This document shows, piece after piece, positions 21,731 to 41,849 of a stretch of 64,000 nt of DNA. Within the stretch, counting starts at the first letter, position 1; every line of letters starts with the position of its first letter. Below the pieces are notes generated by a model. That model did not search any database. It was not told the DNA's origin and saw only the letters and a program-made list of their open reading frames with translations. Source of the stretch: Hyaloraphidium curvatum SAG 235-1 (taxonomy: Eukaryota > Fungi > Monoblepharomycota); assembly GCA_025558095.1 (NCBI GenBank), contig JAIVFI010000001.1, positions 1,054,001 to 1,118,000 of the forward strand, in the 5' to 3' direction. The position numbers and the translations under genes are program-made.

Positions 21731-22092
21731 ATGGTCGGCAGTCGTTTTCTGCAGCGCGCCCCGGGCTCCGCGAGCCGCGCAGCGGGGTCATCTGCCTGGG
21801 GAGCTTCTTTCCGTCTCCGACCGTCTCATCCGCGTTTCCCCCCCCTGCCCGCCAGGCCAAGGCCGCGAGCACCAAGTCGACCCCGCGCAGGAGGGGCCGG
21901 ACTGCCTGGACCGAGTGCGCGTCCCGCGCGCCACCTGCGGCCGGGTGCTCATCCCGCCCACGCAGCTACCTCAAGACCGAAATCCCGCGGCTCAAGAGCG
22001 AGAACCCGGACAAGGTCCACAAGGACCTGATGAGGCTCGCTGGAGAGAACTGGAAGACGGCGCCCGAGAACCCCAACCGCGAGTCGGATTGA
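21731..22092 (+). CDS. Small YABBY/HMG-box-like protein (~62 aa, 3 exons; first coding exon is ATG only)
   Basis: ATG|gt...cag|AKAASTKSTPRRRGRTAWTD|YLKTEIPRLKSENPDKVHKDLMRLAGENWKTAPENPNRESD*. Fits the single HMG/YABBY pattern (E-x-x-R-x-K-x-x-NP...H-K...A-x-x-W). Confidence 0.7.
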
Positions 22093-23629
22093 TCCGGCCC
22101 TTTCGCACGGTGGGCTGGCCAGGAAGCGAGGGTGCTCGATCGTCCACTAAGCCCGCATCCTACGCAGCTCTATACCTGCGATACCCACACGGCCGCATGG
22201 ACACGGCCGCCTGTCGGACGAGCGAGGACTATATCGTATCATAACCTGTAACACCACAGCCGATCTGTAACACGAAGCGGACTTCCACCCTACCCGTGTC
22301 TCGCTGGCCGCCACGAAAGTCTTCAACGAGTCCGTCCGATTCGAATCCGCAGAATCCGAGGTCAGCTTGGACTTGCTGCGTGAAAACTGGGCCACCTCAA
22401 GCTTAAGAAGTCCTGTCGAGAACTGGGGAGGGTGCTGGCACAGCTCAAGAGCCTCGGGCGATGTGCCGAAACGGCTTGAGCTCTGCAATCCCGAGTATTG
22501 GTGCCCAGCTGCAATTCAGTTGTTTGGCTTCTTGCAGTCTCTTATCCAGAAGGCGGAATCCGTGGTGCCCGAGGCGGCATGGTCCCGATGCTCCAAACGG
22601 TCGCCAAAACCCCAACCAAGGCCGAAAATGCGCGGTATCGGGTCTTTCAAAGCAGCTGAATCATCAACGTCCGCAGCCGCCTGTCCACCGCGCGGGAATT
22701 CCCGCCCGTGAGCACCACCTCCGTGGAAGCTCCACCAGCCCGGCTTCGCAAACACGCCGGCGACCTCCGGCTCTTCGGTCCGCACCCGGCTGCCCCGGTG
22801 TCCGACTGCCTGCCCCGGGCGGGAGGGACCGCAGGACCCGTCGCTGCGCGCGAGGAACCCGCGGGGAGCGTGCCAACCGGCTCCGGGAGCGGGCGGGCTC
22901 GCCGTGCTGCCGAAGCGGCTGCCGTCGGTGCAGCCGTGAGGGAACAAACGCGGCCGGCCGTGGGAGCCTTCCTGTGGGCGTGTTCCGAGCCCGGTAGTCC
23001 GGGGATGGCGCCGGGCGGGAGAAGCATGCGGACTCGGTCGGGAGCTCGGATACGCCGTCCCGGGAACGCTCGGCGTGCGAAGCTCGCAGCCCGCAAATGC
23101 CGGAAAAAAATGGGGCGGCGGCGCTCGTTGCAGCAGGCGACGGGCGATGGGGAGCGGGGTGCCCGGAGCGGTGACGGTGCGCGTTGGGCCGGAGCCGCGG
23201 TGATTCGACCTCCGAGCCGCCCCGCGGCCTCGAAAGACGTCGATGAGAGCGGCCCGAGTGGAGCCGCCGGCTTAATGCCGCGGGATGGAGAAAACGCAGC
23301 GCGGGTCGACGAGGCGGGTTGGAACTTCGGACGCGCCGTTCCGGGCCCGGCGCCGCCGGCGGCGCGGAGCGCAGAGCGGGGGCGACGCGTCGGCGGTGTG
23401 CGCGGGTGCTCGCGGGCCTCCATCGGCGCGGGCGCCCGCGGGGTGATTGACCCAAACAATGGAGGTGCCTTGGCTGTGCTCGGAGCCGATTTTCAAAGTC
23501 GTCGCCGGGGCTCCGCCGCCCCCGGGCCGGCTGCATCTCGGTCTCGGCTGGCTACCTGCGCGGCGCGGCGGCGATCGGCCGGGAGGGAGGGCGTGGAGGG
23601 GCCGCCGAAGGTTCCCAGCCAGCCACGAC

Positions 23630-23637
23630 TATAAAAG
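23630..23637 (+). promoter_or_regulatory. TATA box of the left orphan HTH gene
   Basis: TATAAAAG in very GC-rich context, ~115 bp upstream of ATG 23746; conserved in the right arm. Confidence 0.65.
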
Positions 23638-23745
23638 GCAGGGGCGCCGGCACTGTTTGGCACAGGCATCAGTGTCATCACACCCCGCCGCCATCGCCGC
23701 CGCCGACGCCGCCTGCTGCCGCTGCATACCCTGACGCTGGCAAGC

Positions 23746-24975
23746 ATGTCGGGCGACGGGCGCTCGCGCATTGGCCGCGCGTTCGACGGTGTGCGCCGCT
23801 TCGTTGCCCGCACCGTGGCCGCGCTCGCCCCGCGCCCGGACGCCCCCGCGCCGGCCGCCCCCGCCTCCTCCCGCAATCCCTGGGCCAAGCTCGCCCCGAT
23901 CGGCGGCCGGATGTCGGCGACGGAGAGCGGCTTCGCCCGAGCGCCGCCGGTCGCCGTGCCGGTCGCCGCTGCCTTCTCCGCCCCCGCACCCCCGGCCCCG
24001 GAGCCCACCCCCTCCCCCGTGGACACTCTCGCCGACACCGGCGCTGCTCCCTGCCCGTGCGCCTCGGCTGTCGCCCTCGCCAAGGAGATGTACTACCTGT
24101 GCGGCGCCGGGCTGTCGCTCGTGCGCCTCATGAGCAAGCTGCGCTGCCACCCGGACGCCGTCCAGGCGCAGCTGGACAAGGAGGTCGCGGCCTACCGGAC
24201 CTACTTGCTACTCAAGAAGGCCGGCGTCTCGGTGCAGGAGGTCGTCGAGCGGGCGGGCTCGCAGGCCGAGGCCGTCAGGCAGCTCGCGCTGCTGGTGGAC
24301 GAGCTGGAGCAACCCGAGCCGGAGCCCGCCGAGCAGGCCGCTGTGCAAGCCCCCAGGGAAGCCGGCGTGCCTGCGACGGAGGGAATGCTCGAGGCTGCCC
24401 AGAAGCCCGAGGACGCCTCCGAGCTCGTCAGCGATGCACCCCTCGTGCAAACCCGCGTGGAAGCCGAGGTGCTCGCTGAGCTCGAGGATGCGGCCGGACC
24501 TCAGAGCCGCAGCCCGTTCCGCATCGGCCAGAGCGCCTTCAACGAGCGCAGGCGGTTCTGGGAGACCATGATCGCCGCCGGGAGCGCTTCGTCCCTCGTG
24601 CAAACCGACTCGGGAGCCTGGGACAGCGCCTCGGAGGACATGCAGCCGGTCGTCGCCCCGCCCGCCGTGCAAGCCCTGGTGGAAGCCGGGGCGGGCGACG
24701 ACAAGCTGTCGGTCTTCAGCTCGGAAGCCGACTCGGACACCCTGAGGGGCAGGTCCTCTGACGACCTGTCCCCGTCGACGCCGACTGCTTCGATGGATGA
24801 CATGCTCATGGGACTGCCGGACGCGGACGCTGTGGAGCCGCATGCCGGCAGCACGGGCGTGGAGGAGGCGGGATGGTCCCAAGGGCCCCGCCACCCCCGC
24901 CCGACCCCATCCCTGGGGAAGCAGTCTTCCTTGAGGCGGTTTGTGCGGTCGCGGGGTGCGCAGAGCGCGCAGTGA
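23746..24975 (+). CDS. Orphan 409-aa protein with two tandem HTH-like motifs (copy 1)
   Basis: ATG ORF with GC3-rich codons. LCGAGLSLVRLMSKLRCHPDAVQAQL and LLKKAGVSVQEVVERAGSQAEAVRQL; Pro/Ala-rich N-terminus, acidic C-terminus. Confidence 0.65.
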   Translation: MSGDGRSRIGRAFDGVRRFVARTVAALAPRPDAPAPAAPASSRNPWAKLAPIGGRMSATESGFARAPPVAVPVAAAFSAPAPPAPEPTPSPVDTLADTGAAPCPCASAVALAKEMYYLCGAGLSLVRLMSKLRCHPDAVQAQLDKEVAAYRTYLLLKKAGVSVQEVVERAGSQAEAVRQLALLVDELEQPEPEPAEQAAVQAPREAGVPATEGMLEAAQKPEDASELVSDAPLVQTRVEAEVLAELEDAAGPQSRSPFRIGQSAFNERRRFWETMIAAGSASSLVQTDSGAWDSASEDMQPVVAPPAVQALVEAGAGDDKLSVFSSEADSDTLRGRSSDDLSPSTPTASMDDMLMGLPDADAVEPHAGSTGVEEAGWSQGPRHPRPTPSLGKQSSLRRFVRSRGAQSAQ

Positions 24976-25649
24976 GGGAGGACTTGTGGGGGGCCTGGCG
25001 CGAGATCTGCGCGGCCGGGCACGAGCAGGAGCCCGTCGGCGGACCTCCGCCGCGGGACGCAGATGTCTTCGGACTTCATGGGGATGCCGGGCCTCAAGGC
25101 ACGGCAACACGTCTTCAGCAGAAGCCCCGGCGCGGATCCGCGTCGCCGGGGCGGTCCCGCAAGGACCTGAAGGAAGGAGTCGCGAGGGTAGGCGAGGTTA
25201 TGCGTAGCCGGAAGCTCGGCCGCGGATCCGGGGACTGGCCACCCCCGGGTCTGCGATCGGGTGAATGGCAAAGCCTGCCGAGCAGATCCGAGCGAACGAG
25301 CATGAGCCACAGCATGACATTCGTGTAACATAAATCTGACACAAATCTGACAGTTGCTGACACCTCGCAATCTGCCGAAGCCCAAAGTCCGGTCCCCTTG
25401 CTGATCAAGAAACCGGTCGGTAAACTCAGGCACGGGAACTCGTCCAGAGAATCCGGGGGGGACTTGGGCCTTGCTCGGTGAAGACGCGGGCTGGATGAGG
25501 GGATGAGAAAGCACGGAGGGACAAGGGGCGGTTCGTGGCCGCACGGTAGCACACCCTGTACATTTTCAGATTACATTCCATTTGCTCAGAAAAGACGTCC
25601 GCACCGCCTGGTGCTCGGCATAGCTTAGTCGTTGTTGTCACCGAGCTTG

Positions 25650-26455
25650 CTATGCTCCGCCGTTGACCGCACCCTGCTTTCTCCGGGCGTTCTGCGCGTC
25701 GCAGAGCGCCTGGTGCTCCTCAATGTCCACGGCGTCTGCGAGAGAAGAGATGAGATCATGCGGGCGGTACAAAGGGCCAAGACCAACCCCAAGCATAGAC
25801 GATCCACTTGTCCTCGATGTCCTCGCCCGAAAAGTAGCTGTCGTCCATGATCTTGCTGGGCAGGGCCACCGCCTTCTTCTTCAGCTTGTTGTGGACCACT
25901 AGGAGGCGAGCGAACGCCGTCAGAAGCCGCCCCAAGCTGCCCGCATTGCCTGAACCGACCAAAAATGCCGATCACCGTCTCGGGCACCGGCTCCCCCTGG
26001 TGCTCCTTCTCGAACGCGACCCTCTGCGCCGCCACGTTTTTCTCCAGCTCCCCCACGGCGAACCCCAGCGTGGTCCGCGTGTCGTCGATCTCGTCCACGA
26101 TCATAACGCGCTTCCCCAGCAGGTTGACGCTGTCAGAGTCGCCACCCACGTCCTTGAACCACTGAGTCTTGACCACGTTCTGGCCGATGATCCCGAACTG
26201 GCCCCCGCCGATGTCTTCATATAGCGACAGCCCCACGCACTGGATAGGGAGAGTCGCGTTCTCCAGCTTCTTAGCAAAGGCGCGAACGATACGAGCCGGG
26301 AGGTATCCGCCAGTCCCGATGGCAATCAGGAGGTCCGGCTTCCACGGCTGGATTTTGTCGGTGTAGACCTTCTGGATGGCCGAATGGACGTCATTGTACG
26401 AAACGTAGATCTTTTCAACCACGGGGGCGGCGCCGTTGGTCGCTGCGGCGGCCAT
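25650..26455 (-). CDS. Xanthine/hypoxanthine-guanine phosphoribosyltransferase, fungal HPT1/XPT1 type
   Basis: KIYVSYNDVH, PDLLIAIGTGGYLPARIVR, KTQW, RVMIVDEIDDTRTTL, VVHNKLKKK, DKWIVYAW. Confidence 0.9.
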
Positions 26456-26749
26456 GGCGTCACGGGGAGGAGATGCGGTTCCCGGGGGCGGGGAAGAGCG
26501 GGAGGGCGTCTCGGAACGGAGTCGGGGTCCCCTAGCCGCGGGAAGAGCGCGAGCGCCGGATCCGGCCCGCAGATGGCGAGAATGCAAGTGCTGCGGAGAC
26601 GGGTCCGCGAGATTCGGGCAGCAGAGCTTCCCTCGAGCCGGGAAAACGGGGTTCAGAAAAACGGAGGTGGGCTTGGTATGGGACGTGGCGAAGCACCACC
26701 TCGGGGCGTGCAACTCATCGATGGCAAATCAGAACTGCGCCGATCAACC

Positions 26750-28311
26750 CTAGCAGCTACAGGTAGACGCCTTCTGCGCCCTCCTCCTCCCACCTCTTCC
26801 TTGCGTTCCCCTTCCCAGCGAGATTCTCTCGCCCCCCTCGTCGCCCACCTCGAATGCAAAAACGGGCAGCCTCACCGCCCTCGCGATGTATGCGAACGCG
26901 TCCTCCACGTGTGCGCCCGTCATCGCCGAGCTCTCAAAGTATGCAATGTCGGGCCTGAACCCCCGCTCGTCGTCCTGCTCCCCGGCAGGGAGCGAGGGGG
27001 ACGCGGGGCGAGCAGAGGCGCCGGGTGCAGCGTCCAGGAGTGCGTCCGAGGAACCGTCCTGCGCCGGTCCCGAGGCGGAGAGCACCGAGGCGCGCTTGGG
27101 GAACGGCGGGGAGGGCGGCGGCGCGCGTCCCGTGGAGTAGCCCGCGTCCCGCTCGGGCGCGGGCGCCGAGGCCGAGGCCACGTTGCGGGAGCGGAACTCG
27201 CCCTGCCGCGAGGACGAGCGGCCCGCGAAGGATTCCAAGAGGAGGGGATCCTCGTCCGCGGGGGAGTAGGCGCTGCCCGAGCCGGCGGTGCGGAAGGAGC
27301 CGGCGTCGCTGGCCTCGGAGCGCTCGCTGGGGGAGAGCCTGCCGCTGGCGGGGAAGGCGATGGGGCGGGAGGGGTTGCCGCCGGGGGAGGAGGTGGATCC
27401 CGTGCCGCGGAGCCAGGTGGAGACCGACATGACGGCGCTCTGCACCGATTCGGCGGCGGCACCGACGGCGGCCACCGCGGCGTCCGCGGCCGAGCGCTGC
27501 GACTCAAAGCTGTCCGATCCTCTGCTGCGCTTCCGTCCGTGGTACGAGCTGCTGGAATTGGAGCGGTGCCGCCCCGTCGCGGCGAGCGGCGGCCGGTCCG
27601 CCGGCCCGCCTGGATTGGGCGCTGCACCCTCGGGCGACCCGTTGGCCGGCGACGACCGGCCCTGGTCCCGGCCCGCAACAAAGGCCTTGCCTCGGTGCTC
27701 CCCGGCGCACATGTCCCTGAGCCAGGCCGCCATTTCCCGGCCCATCTGCTTGTTGACCACGCGCTCATCCGCCAGGTCCGTCTTGTTGCCCAGCAGGATA
27801 AACGGGTACCGCTTCGGGTCCTTTATGGCGCCCTTGTCGATAAAGTCCTCGAGCCAGGCCGGGATGTGCTCGAACGACGACAGGTTGGTGACGTCAAAGA
27901 CGAGCACGCAGGCGTCGGCGCCGCGGTAAAAGGCGGCGCCCAGCGCGCGGAAGCGCTCCTGGCCGGCCGTGTCCCATATCTGCATGGACACGTAGCGGTC
28001 CTCCTCGGCCACGTATATCTTTTTCGGGGCGGGAGCGGGTCAGGCCGGGGGCAGGGGGCCCTGAGCAGGGCCGACTCGCCTCCTTGGTGAAGAAATCCGC
28101 GCCAATCGTGGCCCTGTAGGCCGAGGTGAACCTGCCATGGATGACCTGGTTCCGTATCGATGTCTTGCCGGTGCCGCCGTCGCCAATCATGACGACTTGA
28201 GTGGGTTGCGGGGCGTCCCGGCGGTGTTTGGGGCGGATCGGGGCGGCGCTCCGGGGGTCAGCTGCGGCCCGGGCGGCGGGCGGAGGCGCCACCTTTGAGC
28301 ACGTCCTTCAT
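26750..28311 (-). CDS. Rab7/Ypt7-like small GTPase with a long low-complexity insertion
   Basis: MKDVLK|VVMIGDGGTGKTS, YRATIGADF, IWDTAGQERF, FYRGADAC, GNKTD, ~250-aa insert, FESSA, C-terminal CSC; intron 2 is GC-AG. Confidence 0.85.
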
Positions 28312-28433
28312 GGCGCCTGCAGCAGGCGGGCCTGAGCAGCCTTCCTAGCCGGCAGCGGTGTTTCTGGGCAGCGCCGGAAGTGGTGATTTGAGGCTGTGAT
28401 GCGTGCCCGCCCTGCACGCATCGTCAGTCAGCA

Positions 28434-31400
28434 ATGTCTTCTGAGGAGTCGCCGACGTCGCCATCGTCGCCGACGTCTCCGCCGCACGAGGCCGTTGCGC
28501 TCGACGCGGACCCGCTCGGCGCGGCGGCGGCGGAGGCGGCGGAGGGCGGCGGGGACGGCGACGCGCCGCCCGCGGAGGACGCGCCGCCCGTCCCGGCAAA
28601 GGGGGGCGCGGGCGACTCGGCGGCCGACGCGGCGACGGAGCCCGCGGCGGCGGGCGCGACCGATGACGCGGCAGCCGCGGGGGTGGGCGCGGGGGGCGCG
28701 CCCGGGGAGGCCGCCGACGCCGTCCTCGCCCAGCTGCTCGGCATGGGATTCGACATCGCCGACGCGTCGGTCGCGCTCGCGCAGTGCACGAAGCAGTTCG
28801 CCTCGCTCGACGGCGTGCCCACTGAGCTGCTGCTGGACCAGGCGCTGGCGTGGCTGGCTGGCACCGTCGACGCGTCGGACGCCCCGCCGCCACCGACCCG
28901 TGGGTCTTGCCGGGGCGATCCACACCGCATTGCTGACACCTGGTTGTCCAGCCGTGGCACCGCGCCCCGCCCCTGCGACGCCCGGGGCACCACGCGCCCC
29001 CCCGAAGCCCATCCTCAAGGCTACCATGACCCCCGATCACGAGCGCCCCACCTTCTTCGCCTCGGCGCGCAACTGGCTCACGTCGCACCTGCCGACATCG
29101 GTCTCGACCATCGGCAACACCTTCGCAAACACGCTCAAGAGCCCCTCCTTCGGCGGCGACGAGGCGAGGTCCGGCTTGGACTCGCCGCTGCCGGCCACTC
29201 CCTCGTCGAGCTCCAACCCGCCCCCCGTGCCGCCCAAGGCGGCCGCCGCCCGCGCCAACAAGCGCGTGCGCTTCTCCTTCCACGACATCTCCTTCCCGCC
29301 GCCGCCCGAGTTCGACGAGCACGAGCCCACGTTTGGCCTACAATCGTCGCGCGATGACGGCGAGCCCGGCCCGTCGGGCGCTTCCTCTTCGGCCGCGACA
29401 GGCTCGGCGGAGGAGAGCGAGCCGGCCGCCGCCGAGCCGGAGCCCCAGCAACCGCTGGTCCGCAAGCCCCCCGGCGAGATGCACACGGCGGCCGAGGTCT
29501 ACCAGCTCTACATGAGCGAATGCGATCGGCGGCGGGAGCAGGCCATCCCGCAGCTCATCGAGGACATGCAGGAGGCATTTGCCCGCGAGTCGGAGCTGCT
29601 CAAGCTGGACCTCACGGGCACGGTCATCGACAAGCGCAACGTGTACCCGCTCGCCGAAATCCTCTCGGTCAACTTTGGCCTCCGGCAGCTGTCGCTCGAG
29701 GCCTGCGGTCTGGACGACGACTGCCTCAAGATCATCCTCAACAACCTCCTCACCCTGGACCGCCTGCCCTGGCTCAACCTGAGCGGCAACCGCAAGCTCT
29801 CCAACAACGGCCTCAAGTTCGTCGCCATCTACGTCAAAAAATCGCGCACGCTGCGCTACCTCGACCTCTCCCGCACCGCCCTCGACAAGACCGCCTGCAC
29901 CTTCCTCACCCACGCCCTCTCCATGGGCCCCGTCCCTGCCGACTCCAAGCCCGAGGACGCGCTCGGCGCCTCGCTCGAGGTCCTCAAGCTCGAGGACTGC
30001 AAGCTCAAGGCGTCGCAGCTCGAAGTCCTCGCCACGGGCATCGCGTTTTCCAACCTGCACTACCTCTCGCTGCGGCACAACCAGCTCGACGCCAACGCCG
30101 CGTCCTGGGTCGCCGAGATGATCCGGCCGGACGACGAGCTGAGGAAGATCAAGTTCGAGAGGAACAGCAGGCTGCCGCCGGCGGAGAAGCGGCGCAAGGT
30201 CGGGCTAGGATGCTTGGACATGAGGGAGAACGACATCAAGGTCCGGCGACACCCGTCACCGGCGCGTTGAGTATCCGCTAACCCGCCTTCGGTTCCCAGA
30301 GCGGCGTCGCGGCCATCGCGCAGGCCCTCGCGCTCAACACGGCCCTCAAGCAGCTCGTCCTCCGCGAGAACAAGATCGACTCGCGCGGCCTCGAGGTGCT
30401 CGCCGAGATGCTCAAGGTCAACCATGGCCTGACCTCGCTGGACCTGAGCGTCAACCCCCTCGGCGGCTCGGCCGACTCGCGGGGGATCGAGAACCTCAAG
30501 GACGCCCTGGCGCTCAACAAAACGCTGGAGGAGCTCTCGCTTTCCTCGGTCGGCCTCACCTCCGAGGCAGCCGTCACCCTGGCCGAGGCGCTGCCGTTGA
30601 CTTCAACCCTGTCCCGCTTGGACCTGACCTTCAACCCCATCGACGTTGCGGGGCTGATGGGCATCGCGGCTTCGCTCAAGATGAACGGGAGCCTGACCAA
30701 CCTCGAGGTGGCGCCGGTGCTGAAGCAGCACAAGGACTCGGGCGGTGCGCTGGTCGAGGTGAGCCTACTGGTGGGGGAAGGAGAAGGGAAGGGCTGACGA
30801 GGACGTCGCGCGCTTCAGGAGGACCCGGAGTTCACCCGCTTGCTCGGGGACATTGGCGCACAGTGCGAGAAGAACGCCGTTCGGGCCAAGGAAGCCGAGG
30901 ACGCGCGACTGGCCGAGATGGAGCGCGAAGGGCGGCGCGTGGAGGACGCGGAGCGCGAGGAGGAGGAGGAGGAGGAGCGGCAGATGATCCTGGACGCCCA
31001 GCGGGCGGAGAAGGAGCGGCTGCGGAAGTTGGAGGAGCAGCGCGAACGCGCCGAGGCCGAGAAGGCGGCGGGGATCCGGGACGAGCCGCCGATCGCCCCG
31101 CGCAAGTTCGACGCGGACACGATACTGCAGGACTTCGGGACGGCCAGGGAGTCGTTCCAGGTGTTGCAGGAGATGATGGACGCGGGCGGGGACGCCGAGG
31201 TGCTCGAGCAGCTGTACCTGCAGTGCACGGAGCTCGAGGCGAGGCTGCTGGCAGCCGTCAACAACAACTTCGTCTCTTCCGAGAAGCTTCTCGGTGGGTT
31301 TCGATGCTGGTCGGAGGCGCAAAACGGGCGATGACGGCTGTCTTCACTCCACAGGGGAGATCCTGGCGCTCAACGACCGGATGCGGCCTGTCATGCAGGC

Positions 31401-31815: not shown

Positions 31816-31871
31816 ACGAACTAGCCAGAGTCTTGGCCAAGGGCATGAGAATGAGTGAATTCAAGACCAAC

Positions 31872-32972
31872 TCAGACAATCACATCGCAGTCGGGGTATC
31901 TCGATTGCACAATCGCCCGCAGTTTCGGCACGTCCGGGAAGTCGCAAAGAATGGCCACAAACGTCTCGAGCCGCCGCGTTGTCAATGCGAACGCGGCCTC
32001 CTCGGCGACGCTCTGCTTCAGCCATGCCGACGAAGCGCTCACGTCCAGGTGCCGCAGCGATATGAGCGCCTTGCACAGTGCCAGCAGCGCGGCCGCCGAG
32101 AACTCGCCACGGAACGTGCCGGCGATGCACAGGGACGTCAACAGCGGGGCGCTCCTCATGACCGTCCAGGCAAGCAGCATTGGGTCCATGTGCGAGCAAA
32201 AGGAAACGTTCAGCACCAAGGGCGGCTCCGCCAAGCGATCGGGGAGAGTTGTTTCCTCGTTGGACCAAGCGTCGTCCGAGGAGGACGAAAGAGTGTCCTC
32301 CCACGTTTCCGGCTCGTCCAGAGCGACTGTACCGTCATGTTCGTCCTCGTCGGGCCCGAATGACTTCCTCTTGCCGATGCCAACAGGCAGGATCCGCCTC
32401 AGGGCAGGCAGCGAGACACGGCTGCCGGATATGTCCAAGATCCGGGACGGAATGTCCCCCACAAAGAGAGTCTTTAGCACGCGATCCGTTATCACGATCC
32501 GTGAAGACGCCAACTGGAGGATCTCGTCGCGCAGGTGGACCGGCAAAATCAAAAACAGTCGAACCGCGTCCTCCTCGGCCGCAAAATCCTTCAGCCTGGA
32601 CGCCAGCTCTGCACAGCACAAGCGGCGTAAGGAGGGAATCGTCCCGGAATCCTCCAGGGCGGCCCGCGAAGTCCGTCGCGCGATCTCTCGGCGGATACTC
32701 TGGAGCTCCTTTTGGGCGACGGCACGAACAGTCTGGTCCTTCCAAGTCTTTGGCGTCGGTCCCGCAGCAACCCTCTTGCCCGTCAGAACGACGTCCACTC
32801 CGCTGTCGTCCGCCAGAGGTCCCCCGGAAGGAGGAGGATTGCGGTTGAACTTCCGCATCAGCGACAGGAGTTCATTCACGGATCGGGTGGCCTTCGGGGC
32901 TTCATCACGTGCCCGAGGCGGGGTTGGCGGTGGCCTCACAACGCTCAGTAGGCGCTGATTCTTCCTTCCCAT
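31872..32972 (-). CDS. Hypothetical LRR (RNI/AMN1-like) protein with BC-box-like motif
   Basis: ATG 32972; IPSLRRLCCAEL motif; LRR-like LDISGS, LNVSFC, LRHLDVS. Confidence 0.5.
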   Translation of the reverse strand: MGRKNQRLLSVVRPPPTPPRARDEAPKATRSVNELLSLMRKFNRNPPPSGGPLADDSGVDVVLTGKRVAAGPTPKTWKDQTVRAVAQKELQSIRREIARRTSRAALEDSGTIPSLRRLCCAELASRLKDFAAEEDAVRLFLILPVHLRDEILQLASSRIVITDRVLKTLFVGDIPSRILDISGSRVSLPALRRILPVGIGKRKSFGPDEDEHDGTVALDEPETWEDTLSSSSDDAWSNEETTLPDRLAEPPLVLNVSFCSHMDPMLLAWTVMRSAPLLTSLCIAGTFRGEFSAAALLALCKALISLRHLDVSASSAWLKQSVAEEAAFALTTRRLETFVAILCDFPDVPKLRAIVQSRYPDCDVIV

Positions 32973-33097
32973 GGGAAGCGCGAGCTCTTGTCTCCGGCCG
33001 AAGTGCCCTGGAGTCCGAGATATATGCGTGATCGACGCCGCCAAACAGAAGCGACCCTTCCGCTCGCTTCTGCCGCGTGTCCGGGGGCGCAGAGACC

Positions 33098-34988
33098 ATG
33101 AAACTCACTCCGGCAACGCTCTCTGCGCTCCAGGATACGCCACAGGCGCTTTCGGAGCTCACTTCGATCTGCCTGCCGGACAGGGGCATCACGTCAATCG
33201 AGGATATTTCCGCGGCAACGGACCTCCGGAAGGTGGACTTGCACGGCAATTCGCTGAAGAATGCCGACTCCCTGGCGGGCCTTCGGTATTGCACCGGGAT
33301 CACGTGGCTCCATTTGGCCGGGAACGACTATGGGAACGTCTGTCCCCCTGGAACGGTGCTGGAGAAGATGAGAGGGCTGAAAGGTGACTCTTCCGCCACG
33401 CAATGACGGCCTCTGCTCGGTCCTTATGCCGCTCGTGTCAGTCCTGAACATGTCCAACAATCGCATCGTTCGCTTTTCCGTCCCCGACCTCTCGCGGCTT
33501 TCCGCGCTCAACGCCCTCATCCTTTCCCACAACGAGATACCCGTGCTCGAAAAGGACACCTTCGCGGCGCTCCGGAACCTGAATACCCTGGTCCTATCTC
33601 ACAACAAGCTGGGAGTGTTGCCGGAGGGCATGTTTGCGACGATGGCCAACCTGAAGAAGCTGTCGCTGGCGCACAACCAGCTCAAGTTCTTCCCGATCGG
33701 GTTGCCGACGAACCTGCAGGAGCTCCGTCTAAACGACAACAAGATCCCTACACCCTCGATGAAGCCCCAGTTTCCGCCTTCGCTTCAGCTGCTGGACGTG
33801 GGCAACAACCTGCTGCAGTCACTCGAACCTAGCTTGGGGCTCGCCCTTTCAACCCTCCCCAACCTCGTGAACCTGAACATGAAAGGCAATCCGGTGTGCA
33901 AGCTTCCGGGCTACCGCGAATCGGTGCTGCTGGCCTGCTCCGAAAGCGGCAAAGGAACCGGGCTGCGGATCCTGGATGGGAACAGGTTCGACGAGAAGTT
34001 CCTTCAGCGGAAGAAGAAAATGGACGCGGCCAAGCGGAAGAAGGAGACTAAGGAAAAGAAGGAGCTGAATTTGAAGAAAGCATCTACGGCTGCGGACGAG
34101 ACGCCGGACAAAGGCAAAGGTTCCAACCGATCTGTGCCGCCAAAGGGAGTTAAGCGAAAAGCCCTTTCTGATGGAGTTTCCGGAGGGGAGCTCGCGAAAG
34201 CGAAGAAGCTGAGGCGCGAGTCGGAGCCGCCAGAGATTCCAGAACGTCTAGGCAGGCCTGCGAAAGTCGCAGGTGATGGCAGTCATTCAAAGAAGCTCGT
34301 GTCGGACATTGAGATCGTCGCCGGGGATGCGGACACTAATGAAGATGCGTCGTCGAAAGCGAAGAAGACGCGACGCGGGAAGCGAGGTGGTAAGGGTGCG
34401 GCCAACGTTGAGGTGGACAATCTTGAAGAGCTTGCGCGGCCAGCAAAGAATGGATCTTCACAGCGGACCAAAGGCCCCGTGAAGGAGCTGATTGATAATC
34501 CTTGGAGTACGCTAGCGGAGCTTGCCAAATCGTCTTCGAAGTCGTCGTCGGCGGGACTCAAGCGAAATACTGCGCCGAAACTAGACCGCGATCGCGACAG
34601 AGAGCCAAATCTCGTGCCCGAGGTGAAAGCTGCAAAGAAGGCGCACATCGACACAGCCAGCAAGAGCGGGCTTGGAGGCGGAAAGAACAAGCCGGAAGGC
34701 GGGCGCGCGGTGGAAAAGCCAGCTTCGAAGCCGACTGCGCCCCATCAGCCGGAGCAGGTCGGTAAATTCAACGTCGCCGTCCCAAGAAAGGACCGGCAGT
34801 CTTCGAAGCCTGTGCAAAAGCAGCCCGAGCAATCGGAAGAGGCTCTTCTTGCTGCTCGCAGTGGCGTCGTGGCCGTGATCGAGGCCGAGCCGGCTCGGAA
34901 GAAGAAGGCTGGAGCTGCTACCGCCTTCGACCCCTCTGTGCTCGAATCGTCGGACGGATTTGGAACGGCGATCGCGGGATGGGATTGA
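33098..34988 (+). CDS. SDS22-type LRR protein with Lys-rich C-terminal region
   Basis: Repeats LxxLxLSHNxI/L, LRRcap NPVCKLPGYRESVL...LRILDG, basic tail ending AGWD*; one intron. Confidence 0.75.
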
Positions 34989-35501
34989 AGCAGTGACTCG
35001 CTCATGTAGCTCACATTCTGCAACGCAACCTACGAGGACCCCGACACAAGATGCAGGCGGCCCACAGCATCTACCTCCAGCAATTCCGCAAGATGAAGGA
35101 CGAATACGATGAACGAGTGCGGTTTGAATGGGTCCGCCAGAACATGTCCCCGAGGCGATCAACGAATTCCTCAAAGTCCTTCCCGGTCTGTTGGGAATGA
35201 GCGATTGGAGTCCGTACGATTTCCGCATTTGCCCAAGACTGTCCTGATGCTCTTGAGCATATGCTATACCGGGCGCACCATGCACCAGCGACTTGCACGT
35301 CTCCCCGAGTCCGATTGTGCCGACATCACACAAGAACATGACCGTATCAACAGACTCCCCGACTCGCAGTCCCTCTTAGCTGCCACGAAGCAGCAATACG
35401 CATCGACGCTGCGTTGGATCCAGTTGGAGCTCGGCGTTGGAGATCCGCGCGATTTTAGATGGCCGCTGTCTGTCAAATGTCCTTGCAGTTGTGGAGCGCC
35501 T

Positions 35502-38216
35502 CTAGGCAAGCACGTCGCCCACCACCGAAGACGGTGCCATCAACGCCCTCCTACGTTGCCAGATAGCGTTCGAGCCCAATGTCGCTACGTGCTTGCATAC
35601 TCGCTGGCAAAGAAGCCGGCGGAGGAGGCTCAGATGCCTTGCCGCAGAGGACGGGTCCGCCGAGAACGAAGCGCGTTTCCCCCGGCCGGAAGTGACACTG
35701 ACTGCCAAAGTCCGTGCCCACATCGAAGCACGCTGGCCAGCGTTTTGCGAATGGTCTGCTTGGGATAAGGCAATGTCGGCGACCGCGCATACGGCCACGA
35801 CGGCCGCTGCCAGATCCACCCCAATCGCCACCGCGCCCGCGTTGGACGCCGCCGGCGCCGATCCCGCATCCGCGGCGGCATCCAGCTCCCGCACCTCCGA
35901 ATCCAGCGCCGTGACATCACTGTCGCACGGCTTCATCTCCAGCACCGTCCGGTTCACCCCGAATGAATCCCTCCCGGAGCCCCCGGACCGCGCCGCACAC
36001 AGCCCCGAAGCCTCGCTCCGCAGCCTCGCCCCACCCCCCGACTCCGGCCTCGTCCACAGGGCGCGGCCGTTGCCGCGGCGCCAGGGGCACGCCTCAAGCC
36101 GGGGCCAGCGGGACGAGATGTTGGGGGCGGTGAGACACAGGCCCGTTTCGAGGTACACGGCCTGGCATTCGGGTCCGAGGTGCGGGGGGCAGTACATGGT
36201 CCACGGGGTTTCTGGGGTGCGGCTCGAGAGCATCGCATTGCGCTCGAAGCATTCGAGCGAGCGGTCGCCGTACGAGATCCTCACCGAGGCGATGGGGAGC
36301 GGGTTCGCGACCAGGCCGGGGTTCGTCGCGGATTCATTGAAGGTCGGCAAATGTTCCGTCGCACCTTCATTGATTCCAGGTTGGTTGCGCTGCATGGAAA
36401 ACAACGTTGCAACGCTTTTATCCCCGACCATGGCCACGCGCCTCTCGCCGCAATTGTAGCCGGGATAGGCAAGGCAGTAGGTGGTGGTGGTGGAGTTTTG
36501 GGACAGAAAGAAAATGGATGTCGGTAGTACTGTTCGAGACCTCGCAAGTGGCCCTGGGTTTGGAAGACAAATGGTGCATCGCCCACGGCCGACGTTGGGC
36601 ACGGCCGTACGCCCACCAGGGTGGTGCCGGGGGTTCGGAACAGGCAGTCGGACGAGTTGACCGCACGCAGGTACGAGAGCTCCGTCGTCCACGTGCAGTT
36701 CCCGTCAGCCGATAGCGGGCATACGCGCTGCCACGGCGCCGTGTCGTACGTTAGGTAGCATCCGAAAGCGTCGCACGCAAAGGAAATGAGCGTGCCTTCT
36801 TCGCCTCTGGCCGCGATGTACATTGGCTCGTCCAGAGCGACACCGGGTGGGATGCCCACCGACGTCGACGTGCAGCTCGTCGGTGGCGTCGCATTCCGCA
36901 GCGCAACCGCTTCGGCGGTACCGCACCACGCGAACCATGCACCGGTCCTGTTGCACAGCAAACCCTGCGTCGGATCGTCGCCCAGCGGGTTGCCGAGGGA
37001 CCAATCCACGTTCGTCGGGCACTCAAGCGCTGTCGGCGCGACGGAGAACGCGGAAACGTTGGTGCACCGGCTGTACTCGTACAACGTGCAGTTAGCCGGG
37101 TCGTTGTCATCCCTATACCCCTTCGAGGCAAAGGAGCCGACGCAGCCGGCGAGCGCGCCCACGCGGCGCACCCGCATGTAGAGGCCACCGTCGGTGCAGC
37201 TTTGGACGCAGGTCGCGTGGCCGAACACGGGCTGCGCGGTTCCTGCGGCCGGCGGGCAAGCCGACGGTCCCGCTGCGCCGTGGACGACCATATCCTCGGC
37301 GGGGCCGCACCACTCTGGGAGGGAGGCCGGATCGGTGCGGTTGCAGACGATTCCGCCCGCGGCCTCCGAATAGGCACGGGCACCAAGCCTCTGTTCCACG
37401 GGCTTCGGCGAGCACCCGGCGAGCGCGGTGCAGCTCGCGTCGGTGTAGACGGAACAGTTGCTTGGCGTCGCCACACCGTCGCTCCCGTATGTGGATCCGA
37501 GACACGTTGCCGTTATGCCGGCGCGGCGGATTTTGAGGAACAGCCCCCCGTGCGCGCAGCTCTTCATGTAGGTCCAGTTGCCAAAGTGCCAAGGGCGGCG
37601 CGAGCTGCTCGTCAACAGTGACGTCCGGGCACTCCACAGGCTTGATCTGGTTGACCCGATAGTTGTGCGCATCGCGGCACCAGGTCCCGTTCCAGCCTTT
37701 TTCGAGCCAGTCACACTGGGCGCCGCCACCGGGGGCGGGGTACTGCTCTCCAGGCAGAAGGTCCGTGCAAAAGGGATCCGAGTACCACGAGCAGCTTCCG
37801 GGCACGGCGCCGCGGCACGTCAACTCGGAACGTCGCGTAGGTGCTTTGCCCGGCGATGACACTCGGCATTTTCCGATTGCTGTAGTCGACGCCGAGCCAG
37901 GCGCAGCCATTCGAGGCGCTGCGGATGCAAGAGCTGGCTCGCTCGCACGAGTAGCTGGGCGGCTGGCGGACCGCGAGCCGGGAAGAGCCCCAGATGTCAG
38001 ATTGGCCGCCCTCGCAGCGCCCGACGCACTGCGCGAGGCGCAAAACGCTGCCCGAACCGGCCTTGGAGGCGTCCCGCCTCATGCGGCACACCGTGAAGTT
38101 GGACTCGAACTTGGCGTCCGAGGAGAACGTCGAGGCCGCCCGAGCGACCGCCGCCCCGCGGCGAGCAGCGCGAGCGACGCCGTCCACGAAATCCGCACTG
38201 CCCGCTGCCGCCCCAT
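35502..38216 (-). pseudogene. Frameshifted type-I membrane/secreted protein: signal peptide, three Cys-rich repeats, ricin-B-like domain(s), TM
   Basis: Coding signal changes frame near 38155, 37825, 37592 and 36512, with no usable intron at the 37592 and 36512 shifts. The TM-like segment AVAIGVDLAAAVVAVCAVADIAL contains Asp residues. Confidence 0.6.
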
Positions 38217-38878
38217 CGGCTCAAGTGGGGGAGAGGGGGACGAAAGGATAGGAAGGGGGCACCGAAGGGAAAGTTCTTCAGGGTGGAACGGCCGCCGCTC
38301 GCGTGGAGCTACCGCTGATGGTTTACGCGCGCCTGGGCATTTCGTGTGCCGAGCTGTACAGGTCCATTGTCTGATCTAAGGACCCGCTTTCGTCATGCTT
38401 CCACCTGGCCTTCAGTTAGCCAGGAACAGCCAGTACAGCAGCGCGACCCCCTCCCTTCCACCCAGCCCACCTCCGATTCTTTTGAAGATTCGGTCAATGC
38501 TTGTTATGTTACAACGATGCCATGTCTGTGACTCATGCTCGTTCGCTCGGATCTGCTCGGCAGGCTTTGCCGTTCACCCGATCGCAGACCCGGGGGTGGC
38601 CAGTCCCCGGATCCGCGGCCGGGCTTCCGGCTACGCCAACCTCGCGACCCTCACGACTCCTTCTTCCATGTTTGGCCCCTTCCTTCAGGTCCTTGCGGGA
38701 CCGCCCCGGCGACGCGGATCCGCGCCGGGGCTTCTGCTGAAGACGTGTTGCCGTGCCTTGAGGCCCGGCATCCCAATGAAGTCCGAAGACATCTGCGTCC
38801 CGCGGCGGACGTCCGCCGACGGGCTCCTGCTCGTGCCCGGCCGCGCAGATCTCGCACCGGGCCTCCACAAGCCCTCCC

Positions 38879-40111
38879 TCACTGCGCGCCCTGCGCACCC
38901 CGCGACCGTCCAAACCGCCTCAAGTAAGACAGCTTCCCCAGGGATGGGGTCGGGCAAGGGTGGCGGGGCCCTTGGGACCATCCCGCCTCCTCCACGCCCG
39001 AGCTGCCGGCATGGGGCTCCACAGCGTCCGCGTTCGGCAGTCCCATGAGCATGTCTTCCTCGGCCGACGAGGTCGGCGTCGACGGGGACAGGTCGTCAGA
39101 GGACCTGCCCCTCAGGGTGTCCGAGTCGGCTTCCGAGCTGAAGACCGACAGCTTGTCGTCGCCCGCCCCGGCTTCCACCAGGGCTTGCACGGCGGGCGGG
39201 CCGACGACCGGCTGCATGTCCTCCGAGGCGCTGTCCCAGGCTCCCGAGTCGGTTTGCACGAGGGACGAAGCGCTCCCGGCGGCGATCATGGTCTCCCAGA
39301 ACCGCCTGCGCTCGTTGAAGGCGCTCCGGCCGATGCGAAACGGGCTGCGGCTCTGAGGTCCGGCCGCATCCTCGAGCTCAGCGAGCACCTCGGCTTCCAC
39401 GCGGGCTTGCACGAGGGGTGCATCGCTGACGAGCTCCGAGGCGTCCTCGGGCTTCTGGGCAGCCTCGAGCATTCCCTCCGTGGCAGGCACGCCGGCTTCC
39501 CTCGGGGCTTGCACAGCGGCCTGCTCGGCGGGCTCCGGCTCCGGTTGCTCCAGCTCGTCCACCAGCAGCGCGAGCTGCCCGACGGCCTCGGCCTGCGAGC
39601 CCGCCCGCTCGACGACCTCCTGCACCGAGACGCCGGCCTTCTTGAGGAGCAAAAAGGCCCGGTAGGCCGCGACCTCCTTGTCCAGCTGCGCCTGGACGGC
39701 GTCCGGGTGGCAGCGCAGCTTGCTCATGAGGCGCACGAGCGACAGTCCGGCGCCGCAGAGGTAGTACATCTCCTCGGCGAGGGCGACAGCCGAGGCGCAC
39801 GGGCAGGGAGCAGCGCCGGCGCCGGCGAGAGTGTCCACGGGGGAGGGGGTGGGCTCCGGGGCCGGGGGTGCGGGGGCGGAGAAGGCAGCGGCGACCGGCA
39901 CGGCGACCGGCGGCGCTCGGGCGAAGCCGCTCTCCGTCGCCGACATCCGGCCGCCGATCGGGGCGAGCTTGGCCCAGGGAGTGCGGGAGGAGGCGGGGGC
40001 GGCCGGCGCGGGGGCGTCCGGGCGCGGGGCGAGCGCGGCCACGGTGCGGGCAACGAAGCGGCGCACACCGTCGAACGCGCGGCCAATGCGCGAGCGCCCG
40101 TCGCCCGACAT
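38879..40111 (-). CDS. Orphan 410-aa tandem-HTH-like protein (copy 2)
   Basis: Paralogue of 23746-24975; intact ORF, roughly 15-20 aa differences and one in-frame codon indel. Confidence 0.62.
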   Translation of the reverse strand: MSGDGRSRIGRAFDGVRRFVARTVAALAPRPDAPAPAAPASSRTPWAKLAPIGGRMSATESGFARAPPVAVPVAAAFSAPAPPAPEPTPSPVDTLAGAGAAPCPCASAVALAEEMYYLCGAGLSLVRLMSKLRCHPDAVQAQLDKEVAAYRAFLLLKKAGVSVQEVVERAGSQAEAVGQLALLVDELEQPEPEPAEQAAVQAPREAGVPATEGMLEAAQKPEDASELVSDAPLVQARVEAEVLAELEDAAGPQSRSPFRIGRSAFNERRRFWETMIAAGSASSLVQTDSGAWDSASEDMQPVVGPPAVQALVEAGAGDDKLSVFSSEADSDTLRGRSSDDLSPSTPTSSAEEDMLMGLPNADAVEPHAGSSGVEEAGWSQGPRHPCPTPSLGKLSYLRRFGRSRGAQGAQ

Positions 40112-40219
40112 GCTTGCCAGCGTCAGGGTATGCAGCGGCAGCAGGCGGCGTCGGCGGCGGCGATGAAGGCGGGGTGTGATGACACTGATGCCTGTGCCAA
40201 ACAGTGCCGGCGCCCCTGC

Positions 40220-40227
40220 CTTTTATA
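40220..40227 (-). promoter_or_regulatory. TATA box of the right orphan HTH gene
   Basis: cttttata on + strand = TATAAAAG on - strand. Confidence 0.6.
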
Positions 40228-41747
40228 GTCGTGGCTGGCTGGGAACCTTCGGCGGCCCCTCCACGCCCTCCCTCCCGGCCGATCGCCGCCGCGCCGCGCA
40301 GGTAGCCAGCCGAGACCGAGATGCAGCCGGCCCGGGGGCGGCGGAGCCCCGGCGACGACTTTGAAAATCGGCTCCGAGCACAGCCAAGGCACCTCCATTG
40401 TTTGGGTCAATCACCCCGCGCCGATGGAGGCCCGCGAGCACCCGCGCACACCGCCGACGCGTCGCCCCCGCTCTGCGCTCCGCGCCGCCGGCGGCGCCGG
40501 GCCCGGAACGGCGCGTCCGAAGTTCCAACCCGCCTCGTCGACCCGCGCTGCGTTTTCTCCATCCCGCGGCATTAAGCCGGCGGCTCCACTCGGGCCGCTC
40601 TCATCGACGTCTTTCGAGGCCGCGGGGCGGCTCGGAGGTCGAATCACCGCGGCTCCGGCCCAACGCGCACCGTCACCGCTCCGGGCACCCCGCTCCCCAT
40701 CGCCCGTCGCCTGCTGCAACGAGCGCCGCCGCCCCATTTTTTTCCGGCATTTGCGGGCTGCGAGCTTCGCACGCCGAGCGTTCCCGGGACGGCGTATCCG
40801 AGCTCCCGACCGAGTCCGCATGCTTCTCCCGCCCGGCGCCATCCCCGGACTACCGGGCTCGGAACACGCCCACAGGAAGGCTCCCACGGCCGGCCGCGTT
40901 TGTTCCCTCACGGCTGCACCGACGGCAGCCGCTTCGGCAGCACGGCGAGCCCGCCCGCTCCCGGAGCCGGTTGGCACGCTCCCCGCGGGTTCCTCGCGCG
41001 CAGCGACGGGTCCTGCGGTCCCTCCCGCCCGGGGCAGGCAGTCGGACACCGGGACAGCCGGGTGCGGACCGAAGAGCCGGAGGTCGCCGGCGTGTTTGCG
41101 AAGCCGGGCTGGTGGAGCTTCCACGGAGGTGGTGCTCACGGGCGGGAATTCCCGCGCGGTGGACAGGCGGCTGCGGACGTTGATGATTCAGCTGCTTTGA
41201 AAGACCCGATACCGCGCATTTTCGGCCTTGTTGGGGTTTTGGCGACCGTTTGGAGCATCGGGACCATGCCGCCTCGGGCACCACGGATTCCGCCTTCTGG
41301 ATAAGAGACTGCAAGAAGCCAAACAAATGAATTGCAGCTGGGCACCGATGTTCGGGATTGCAGAGCTCAAGCCGTTTCGGCACATCGCCTGAGGCTCTTG
41401 AGCTGTCCCAGCACCCTCCCCAGTTCTCAACAGGACTTCTCAAGCTTGCCCAGTCTTCACGCAGCAAGTCCAAGCTGACCTCGGATTCTGCGGATTCGAA
41501 TCGGACGGACTGGTTGAAGACTTTCGTGGCGGCCAGCGAGACACGGGTAGGGTGGAAGTCCGCTTCGTGTTACAGATCGGCTGTGGTGTTACAGGTTATG
41601 ATACGATATAGTCCTCGCTCGTCCGACAGGCGGCCGTGTCCATGCGGCCGTGTGGGTATCGCAGGTATAGAGCTGCGTAGGATGCGGGCTTAGTGGACGA
41701 TCGAGCACCCTCGCTTCCTGGCCAGCCCACCGTGCGAAAGGGCCGGA

Positions 41748-41849
41748 TCAATCCGACTCGCGGTTGGGGTTCTCGGGCGCCGTCTTCCAGTTCTCTCCAG
41801 CGAGCCTCATCAGGTCCTTGTGGACCTTGTCCGGGTTCTCGCTCTTGAG
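41748..41849 (-). pseudogene. 5'-truncated copy of the YABBY/HMG-like last exon
   Basis: LKSENPDKVHKDLMRLAGENWKTAPENPNRESD* matches 21991-22092; the upstream frame reaches TGA within ~13 codons. Confidence 0.7.

Follow-up and report, generated by a model that had tools for sequence, protein, structure and literature searches.

A probable old inverted segmental duplication, kept alike by gene conversion, around a 13-kb gene-bearing segment in Hyaloraphidium curvatum

Two near-identical repeat arms in opposite orientation enclose 13,170 bp of ordinary genes on contig 1 of Hyaloraphidium curvatum. We consider the locus to be, with a probability of about 0.7, an old inverted segmental duplication whose arms have been kept alike by non-allelic gene conversion, and which could invert occasionally in an unprogrammed manner. 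Nothing marks the 13-kb segment as a genetic switch.

A first-pass annotation of this DNA had reported near-identical inverted repeats at 21991-25333 and 38504-41849. BLASTN confirms them as reverse complements at 21986-25333 and 38504-41854, with 96.8% identity over 3,371 columns; the alignment includes an exact stretch of 826 nt and a further 412-nt stretch at 99%. The features of the locus are listed below, with coordinates in the window, that is, the whole 64-kb stretch of DNA that was analysed.

21855-21914 and 21966-22108, + strand: exons 2 and 3 of a YABBY/HMG-like gene, stop codon at 22090-22092, from RNA joints
21986-25333, + strand: left arm, parent-like copy, from sequence comparison
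22640-23625, + strand: element X of the left arm, about 1 kb, 74% G+C, non-coding
23630-23638, + strand: TATA box TATAAAAGG, 5' of the orphan gene
23746-24975, + strand: orphan gene, left copy, 409 aa, transcribed, GC3 0.87
25334-38503, no strand: spacer, unique in the genome except for one 69% paralogous stretch and short matches
25625-26713, - strand: XPT1-like phosphoribosyltransferase gene with two small introns (Pfam PRTase)
26753-28039, - strand: main exon of a Ras/Rab-family GTPase gene (Pfam)
28387-31331, + strand: LRR-containing gene, in several ORF pieces (Pfam)
33384-34985, + strand: second LRR gene (Pfam LRR_8, LRR_4)
38504-41854, - strand: right arm, derived, truncated inverted copy, from sequence comparison
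38879-40111, - strand: orphan gene, right copy, 410 aa, protein 95% identical to the left copy
40215-41205, - strand: element X, right copy, 99.9% identity with the left copy
41751-41854, - strand: dead remnant of exon 3 of the YABBY-like gene, outermost in the right arm

Each arm carries an orphan gene in full, from its promoter through the ORF to its 3' end. The earlier description of a TATA-preceded orphan gene in each arm is borne out by the ORFs at 23746-24975 (+) and 38879-40111 (-) and by the TATAAAAGG box at 23630, and the approximately 1.65 kb of DNA it placed upstream of the orphan gene measures 1,653 bp in the left arm, counted from the stop of the YABBY/HMG-like gene (22092) to the orphan ATG. 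The arm was also said to hold the 3' end of this neighbouring gene, and its outer boundary at 21986 does indeed cut exon 3. Public reads took the form of short Logan contigs from three 2018 runs, one of RNA (with GT..AG joints) and two of low-coverage DNA, and none of their records reaches across a whole arm. RNA joints place introns of the YABBY/HMG-like gene at 21733-21854 and 21915-21965, with a 3'UTR intron at 22109-22166, and the transcript reaches at least 22384. The corresponding fragment in the right arm spans exon residues 7-41 and is without splice acceptor or upstream exons.

The orphan protein returned no credible match in Pfam and no usable match in an Atlas search, while a large word search recovered only the paralogues of H. 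curvatum itself. It is predicted to be mostly disordered (mean pLDDT of the AlphaFold model, 39), and its gene has a dN/dS of ~0.8 against the contig-18 copies. The TATAAAAGG box is kept in the contig-1 and contig-18 copies and missing from those on contig 23. Upstream of the gene lies element X, which has exactly seven copies in the genome, as does an invariant 27-mer within it (23453-23479). Parts of element X are more conserved than a uniform rate would give (p<0.0002), and these blocks are invariant despite ~30% divergence. A coding function for X was rejected: codon periodicity is absent, indels do not come in threes and reading frames are broken among the copies. A structured RNA was likewise rejected, with no Rfam match at E<=1 and an RNAalifold covariation term of +6.95, which is a penalty.

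The two arms differ in how they end. Homology between the left arm and the third copy on contig 1, which lies in direct orientation 45 kb further along, continues for ~290 bp past the outer end and ~100 bp past the inner end. Homology to the right arm is lost abruptly at both ends. Flanks beyond the repeat ends are common to the left arm, copy 3 and the right arm of the contig-18 pair, but not to the right arm on contig 1. The right arm on contig 1 is accordingly the derived copy. It also lacks 10 bp that the left arm has at 23427-23436. Our search for a target-site duplication at the right arm found none, in agreement with the first reading of the sequence.

The arms have also exchanged sequence since they were formed. 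The three contig-1 copies are mosaics of one another: their 233 informative sites fall into 48 runs, against 98.6 expected, and none of 10,000 shuffles reached 48. The left and right arms agree over 21991-23873, the left arm and copy 3 over 24035-24530, and the right arm and copy 3 over 24656-25045. At the level of sequence comparison, this mosaic shows that the three copies have repeatedly copy-corrected one another by non-allelic homologous recombination. The arm cores are 94-100% alike and the edges have drifted to ~81-84%, an erosion present in both the contig-1 and the contig-18 pairs. The identity of the arms alone could equally reflect a young duplication, and it is only from the eroded edges and the mosaic that age and conversion are read. 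Sex-chromosome palindromes likewise have long inverted arms with expressed genes, held near-identical by intrachromosomal conversion. The recurrent X-linked inversion of mammals, cited within PMC9731477, is a comparable case. As in these systems, divergence here gathers at the arm edges, although the scale is kilobases rather than tens to thousands of kilobases and both organism and chromosomal context are different.

Similar pairs occur elsewhere in the genome. Contigs 18 and 23 carry homogenised inverted pairs of X plus a downstream gene, with spacers of 31 and 77 kb at the two contigs, and an older, diverged pair on contig 7 is without X and divergent in orientation. All three X-bearing loci are inverted pairs with their genes pointing inward. 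Copies of element X are 0.925-0.999 identical when they share a locus; the value is 0.85 for contig 1 against contig 18 and 0.68-0.70 in comparisons with contig 23. An ORF in the contig-23 arm was considered as a diverged homologue of the orphan and rejected (BLASTP E=0.71). In terms of the unit, the inner repeat ends on contigs 1 and 18 map to one point to within ~40 bp. Overall, the repeat ends vary from locus to locus and do not match the points where family homology stops, with the contig-1 arms extending 600 bp further out. The spacers are mutually unrelated, those on contigs 18 and 23 holding genes for Tim44, DnaJ, chitin synthase, the catalytic subunit of Pol epsilon, a DEAH helicase and oxoprolinase. 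Inward-facing pairs at three X loci, combined with nearly coincident inner ends, are not easily explained as independent accidents. The pattern may point to an arrangement inherited from a common ancestor, to a favoured site of breakage, or to selection that keeps the copies paired.

The spacer on contig 1 encloses six genes. Pfam domains support the earlier naming of an XPT1 gene, a Rab7-like gene and two LRR genes (as PRTase, Ras/Rab and LRR matches, respectively), and the ORFs then called 'MHP1/GIP3-like' and 'receptor pseudogene' gave no Pfam match. According to RNA contigs, the XPT1-like transcript terminates within the left arm, at position 25277 or lower. As the first-pass annotation had noted, no transposase is visible among the Pfam domains of spacer and arms, and neither transposase nor recombinase turned up in the spacer ORFs or, for the window as a whole, in the 25 Pfam families listed out of 43. 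No tRNA lies within the 64-kb window. The locus sits 1.08 Mb into a 1.6-Mb contig, where G+C varies between 57 and 77% from one 2-kb bin to the next without any block standing out, and no landmark for silencing was recognised. A match of 100 bp joins the inner flank of the right arm to contig 34. Our literature search on the nuclear genome of H. curvatum returned mitochondrial papers only.

Several other explanations have to be weighed against an old, converted duplication. The locus was initially proposed to be a flip-flop, in which the 13.2-kb segment would be inverted on cue to change cell type or expression, as at the MAT loci of Ogataea and Komagataella. Part of this proposal stands: kilobase-scale inverted repeats do surround a gene-bearing segment, an HMG/YABBY-like gene abuts one arm, and the mosaic shows that the arms recombine, which makes inversion by homologous crossover mechanistically plausible. 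The regulatory or cell-type switch does not follow, as a flip alters no transcription unit and no recombinase is seen in the spacer ORFs or the window families listed. Since each transcription unit is complete inside an arm or inside the spacer, the two orientations should be equivalent. The suggestion of a mating role fares no better. Searched as single ORFs or exons, the neighbouring gene scores 25.1 bits for YABBY against a Pfam threshold of 28.6, and 15.8 against 25.4 for HMG_box; furthermore, it stays intact in either orientation, just as the first-pass annotation had itself pointed out. In the Mucorales, the sex locus consists of an HMG-box gene flanked by genes for a triose-phosphate transporter and an RNA helicase; here the HMG_box match is sub-threshold, and the 25 Pfam families listed (of 43 in the window) include neither of the flanking ones. 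In Ogataea polymorpha and Komagataella phaffii a MAT gene set lies at each end of the invertible segment, one of them silenced by its position, so that orientation sets cell type (PMC4238957, PMC6692504). Those segments, of tens of kilobases and inverted by homologous recombination, are likewise flanked by kilobase-scale inverted repeats, but the two ends of the H. curvatum segment are without MAT-type or other cell-type genes and a flip would alter no gene. Together with the presence of the same repeat family around unrelated housekeeping blocks at two other loci, this makes a programmed switch very unlikely.

The locus might instead be the static scar of one staggered-break inversion, its 3.35-kb arm being the filled-in overhang of one breakpoint. 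Such a break is known to leave an inverted duplication of one breakpoint region, of non-repetitive sequence, that brackets a segment without transposon marks (Ranz et al. 2007, PMC1885836), as is seen here. The arrangement of the flanks differs, however. The model puts the ancestral inner flank beside the derived copy, whereas here the ~100-bp ancestral tail adjoins the parent, left arm; the scar reading therefore needs a second, homologous re-inversion or a different origin. This misfit with the present orientation tells against the earlier suggestion that the segment records a single inversion. The mosaic and eroded edges, moreover, show long interaction and homogenisation after the event, and the family is paired at three or four loci. 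We regard a simple scar as unlikely. A third possibility gives the X-plus-gene unit an active or selected role, either as a selfish module that seeds inverted copies or as a chromosomal element working in mirrored pairs (a domain boundary or recombination suppressor) and kept by selection. In its favour are the inward-facing pairs at every X-bearing locus, with spacers of 13, 31 and 77 kb, the near-coincidence of inner ends on contigs 1 and 18, the invariant blocks of X, and a gene family that is lineage-specific and fast-evolving like the yeast Centroid. Against these, only three to four loci are involved, and chance would give four out of four local pairs inverted with a probability of ~1/16 and three out of three convergent with ~1/4. 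Contig 1 also carries a direct copy, the contig-7 pair is divergent and without X, the repeat ends vary among loci, and the unit encodes no catalytic domains, its orphan protein being mostly disordered by prediction. An active or selected pairing element is, on balance, quite unlikely.

The arms could also be read as the terminal inverted repeats of a giant or composite transposon or virus-like element, with the spacer as cargo. In favour of this, long terminal inverted copies are present at several loci. One of the outcomes that the first-pass annotation named as refuting its proposal, the arm being a dispersed multicopy transposon, is partly borne out, since the arm has several copies in the genome. 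Its behaviour is nevertheless not that of a transposon. In addition to the lack of a target-site duplication, the contig-1 locus yielded no domain of a transposase, integrase, polymerase or capsid (in the spacer ORFs and the 25 of 43 window families listed), the repeat ends mismatch those of family homology with the parent copies running past the inner end, and the supposed cargo is unrelated between loci and elsewhere consists in part of housekeeping genes (for the Pol epsilon catalytic subunit, Tim44, chitin synthase). We therefore judge a mobile element to be highly improbable. Near-identical repeats of this size are hard to place, and an assembler might have duplicated or mis-oriented one copy. 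Nonetheless, the differences between the arms are patterned, their edges have eroded, and RNA contigs run across the two left-arm junctions, which is where the junction support lies. A check by arm-specific variants had been recommended against misassembly: the 10-bp deletion specific to the right arm (23427) is present in contigs of a public DNA run, and variants shared by the right arm and copy 3 occur in public-run contigs. An assembly artefact is scarcely credible on this evidence.

We propose the following course of events for an old duplication maintained by conversion. The duplicated unit would have consisted of the non-coding element X, the TATA promoter, the fast-evolving orphan gene and its 3' end. 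The truncated right arm came to lie 13 kb from the parent left arm, in opposite orientation and without marks of transposition. Afterwards, non-allelic homologous recombination repeatedly copy-corrected the two arms and the direct copy 3, and a minority of these events may resolve as crossovers, inverting either the 13.2-kb spacer or the 43-kb segment from the right arm to copy 3 now and then. Inversion would thus be a by-product rather than a programmed switch. More generally, local inverted duplication followed by conversion may be a recurrent fate of the X-plus-gene unit.

The closest known case is the flip/flop region of Saccharomyces cerevisiae chromosome XIV, in which inverted repeats of ~4 kb surround 24 kb with 15 genes (PMC9731477). 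Both orientations are found across strains and species with no known phenotypic effect, and conservation of the repeat ends extends across a genus (PMC9731477). In both fungi, inverted repeats flank a gene-bearing segment (13 kb here) and carry a lineage-specific, fast-evolving and frequently duplicating gene family, and non-allelic gene conversion homogenises the arms, leaving paralogues at one locus more similar to each other than to copies at other places. The two systems also differ. While both orientations are documented in yeast, the H. curvatum locus is known from one assembled orientation. Its repeat family is paired in inverted orientation at three or four places in a single genome, its copies share a conserved 1-kb non-coding element, and no sequence homology to Centroid was seen. 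A bolder view, which we hold to be unlikely, is that the X-plus-gene unit is no passive duplicate but a module that time and again founds mirrored pairs around essential-gene blocks, or is maintained in such pairs by selection, at no fewer than three loci, making recurrently invertible, recombination-suppressed segments with X as the cis-acting part. It would then be a chytrid counterpart of the Centroid flip/flop, multiplied.

If the 13-kb segment inverts now and then, local recombination would be suppressed, and assemblies and synteny comparisons could be confused, as the chromosome XIV flip/flop confused them in yeast for decades. Taken singly, the contig-1 locus is ordinary, and the more useful lead is the pattern across the genome. 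With one family paired at three or four loci and a conserved non-coding element, H. curvatum could serve as a system in which to study the origin of inverted segmental duplications, and their maintenance by gene conversion, in an early-diverging fungus.

The inverted repeat in the window is real. Repeat search and BLASTN place its arms at 21986-25333 (left) and 38504-41854 (right), inverted and 96.8% identical across 3,371 aligned columns, much as a first-pass annotation had described them: near-identical reverse complements. Within them 826 nt (22607-23432) match without a difference and a second stretch, of 412 nt, is 99% identical; the arms enclose a 13,170-bp spacer. Three public runs, one of RNA and two of low-coverage DNA, contain this sequence as short contigs. 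RNA contigs bridge both left-arm junctions and also show that the orphan gene and neighbouring genes are transcribed; the 10-bp deletion of the right arm and variants of the right arm and copy 3 (a third contig-1 copy) are present in the reads. The gene content given by the annotation was essentially right, as judged from Pfam searches of spacer ORFs and from RNA joints.

Features of the locus (window coordinates)
21733-21854, 21915-21965 and 22109-22166: introns of a small YABBY/HMG-like gene, GT..AG joints in RNA contigs of public run X1
22640-23625: element X in the left arm, a non-coding segment of ~1 kb, 74% G+C
23630: TATAAAAGG, between element X and the orphan ORF
23746-24975: orphan ORF, 409 aa, covered by RNA contigs
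25334-38503: spacer, with an XPT1-like phosphoribosyltransferase, a Ras/Rab GTPase and two LRR genes (Pfam), and ORFs without a Pfam match

The outermost part of the arm is the last 107 nt of the YABBY/HMG-like coding sequence, the repeat boundary at 21986 falling 20 nt into exon 3. The third intron lies in the 3'UTR, beyond the stop codon (22090-22092), and the transcript extends to at least 22384. Single exons and ORFs of this gene score below the Pfam thresholds (YABBY 25.1 bits versus a cut-off of 28.6; HMG_box 15.8 versus 25.4). The orphan ORF, with a GC3 of 0.87, encodes a protein with no Pfam domain and no Atlas match, whose only database homologues are paralogues named Hyaloraphidium curvatum and whose AlphaFold model is mostly disordered (mean pLDDT 39). 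Between contigs 1 and 18 the orphan genes show a dS of 0.22 and a dN/dS of about 0.8. Approximately 360 bp of 3' sequence closes the arm at its inner end.

Other repeats lie nearby. Directly left of the YABBY-like gene is a dispersed repeat of ~975 bp (20710-21685, plus strand), with four copies 97-99% identical (contigs 1, 34, 29 and 5) and at least four more at 83-86%. In RNA contigs it has three small GT..AG introns and a depth of ~25,000, versus ~540 for the XPT1-like gene, and its exons contain no long ORF in any frame; it may represent a non-autonomous retroelement or a family of spliced non-coding RNAs expressed at a high level. The left arm and copy 3 cease to be homologous 10 bp from the end of this repeat. 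Elsewhere in the window, a tandem repeat (3749-4352; 228-bp period, units ~91% alike) sits inside a minus-strand coding-like ORF.

Searching the 31.9-Mb assembly (55 contigs), in which the window spans 1,054,001-1,118,000 of contig 1, revealed that the arm belongs to a small multicopy family.

Family members outside the window (L-numbers, local coordinates in stretches of other contigs)
Contig 1, 1,138,960-1,142,743: copy 3, left-arm orientation, 90-92% to the arms, 45 kb past the right arm
Contig 18, 280,245-283,027 and 314,240-317,022: inverted pair, 96.4% mutual identity, ~84% to contig 1, spacer 31.2 kb with genes for Tim44, a DnaJ protein and chitin synthase
Contig 23, 267,110-269,681 and 346,219-348,781: inverted pair, 93.8% mutual identity, spacer 76.5 kb with genes for DNA polymerase epsilon catalytic subunit, a DEAH helicase and oxoprolinase
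Contig 7, ~600.6 kb and ~713.2 kb (L029:6565-7913, L030:4203-5872): inverted, outward-facing pair, 73% mutual identity, ~114 kb apart

The contig-7 pair, orphan-gene relatives without element X, is an older inverted pair. The contig-23 pair has only element X in common with the other copies (68-70% identity); the ORF attached to it there, of 379 codons, is unrelated. Spacers of different loci are unrelated, and on contigs 1 and 18 the inner ends of the repeats lie no more than ~40 bp from a common point. The contig-23 spacer also contains, amid housekeeping genes, a 681-codon minus-strand ORF (L024:2812-4854) with a DDE_3 transposase domain (E=4.8e-12), and contig 18 carries an unrelated small inverted repeat at ~270.8-272.6 kb (L013:837-1195 and L013:2208-2571; 364 bp, 97%, ~1 kb apart).

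The genome contains exactly seven copies of element X (L014:290-1290 and L019:7270-8270 among them). The element lacks codon periodicity, and the copies compared have broken frames and indels whose lengths are not multiples of three. An Rfam search matched nothing, and the RNAalifold covariation term was a penalty (+6.95). A 27-mer at 23453-23479 is invariant in all seven copies, with further invariant 15-mers at 23487-23501 and 23573-23587, and 165 positions lie inside identical runs of at least 12 versus 41 expected (p<0.0002). RNA contigs cover the element at low depth (22-60). A promoter or enhancer module would be our guess.

The three contig-1 copies differ at 233 informative sites, which fall into 48 runs versus 98.6 expected (0 of 10,000 shuffles as low), a pattern indicating that these copies are still recombining. 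Three tracts stand out.

Conversion tracts among the contig-1 copies
21991-23873: left arm matches right arm
24035-24530: left arm matches copy 3
24656-25045: right arm matches copy 3

Such tracts explain why the upstream parts of the arms are identical and the coding parts more diverged. On contig 1 as on contig 18, arm identity falls to 0.80-0.84 in the outermost 100-150 bp, as against 0.94-1.00 in the cores; these eroded edges are the signature of old repeats homogenised by tracts that rarely extend to the edges. Edge divergence approaches the synonymous divergence of contig-1 and contig-18 genes (dS 0.22), which suggests that the age of the inverted pairs may come close to that of the split between loci.

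How the second arm arose can be approached from the flanks. Beyond the inner end, ~100 bp following GTGTAACATAA still align among three copies: the left arm, copy 3 and the right arm of contig 18; beyond the outer end, the left arm and copy 3 continue for ~290 bp, where copy 3 takes in the whole YABBY-like paralogue. The contig-1 right arm loses all similarity at both ends and is, because of this lost flanking homology, a truncated, derived copy. A single staggered-break inversion should place the ancestral tail beside the derived copy (PMC1885836); here it adjoins the parent copy, and the earlier suggestion that the repeat is the scar of one inversion is not borne out. Either no inversion accompanied the duplication that gave rise to the right arm, or the inversions have been even in number. 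The 95 bp adjoining the right arm's inner end (38356-38450) are 82% identical to contig 34:495540-495640; a distant YABBY-like paralogue (contig 34:490614-490724) lies ~5 kb from that site, and the surroundings show no more similarity.

The repeat was also considered as a mobile element and rejected. No target-site duplication accompanies the right arm, and Pfam found no transposase, integrase or recombinase domain in the arms or spacer; the annotation, too, had seen neither a duplication nor a transposase. Nor is there such a domain among the families listed for coding-like ORFs of the window (25 of 43), all 25 of them housekeeping. The contig-18 and contig-23 spacers hold housekeeping genes as well. 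The repeats and the family homology have different limits: on contig 1 the arms reach 600 bp beyond the outer limit of the part that they share with contigs 18 and 23, and parent copies continue beyond the inner repeat end. The proposal of a regulatory or cell-type switch finds no support. The arm contains the orphan gene complete with promoter, ORF and 3' end, the XPT1-like transcript terminates inside the left arm (RNA contig 25277-26600, zero mismatches), and the YABBY-like gene runs on into whichever arm sequence adjoins, so that, as the annotation had anticipated, a flip would leave this gene unchanged. Since transcription units are complete in arm or spacer, a crossover within the arms restores the same units, and the anatomy offers a switch nothing to switch. 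Contigs of the public runs all stop short of spanning an arm, and short contigs are blind to orientation because the inner part of the arm moves with the spacer in a crossover.

The locus is thus best read as a conversion-homogenised inverted segmental duplication, whose spacer may invert now and then as a by-product. Its closest match is the 24-kb flip/flop region on S. cerevisiae chromosome XIV, where 4.2-kb inverted repeats carrying Centroid, a lineage-specific, fast-evolving and often-duplicating gene family, are continually homogenised by non-allelic gene conversion and a crossover now and then turns the region round again, an event that has no known effect on phenotype (PMC9731477). The contig-1 locus resembles it in structure and homogenisation, although the yeast region is defined by two orientations whereas ours is known from assembled sequence. 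It does not match an Ogataea-type mating switch, a Mucorales-type sex locus, a transposon or a fresh staggered-break scar.

For the family as a whole, a general bias of the H. curvatum genome towards inverted local duplication would be the simplest account of the pairs. That the family is an active or selected pairing element seems improbable: every X-bearing locus is an inverted, inward-facing pair, with X outermost and the gene pointing inward in three of three, but with only three or four loci the orientation pattern has a chance of ~1/16 and is not statistically compelling. The recurrence of inverted pairs at the level of the family, together with element X, are the parts of this system that deserve further attention.
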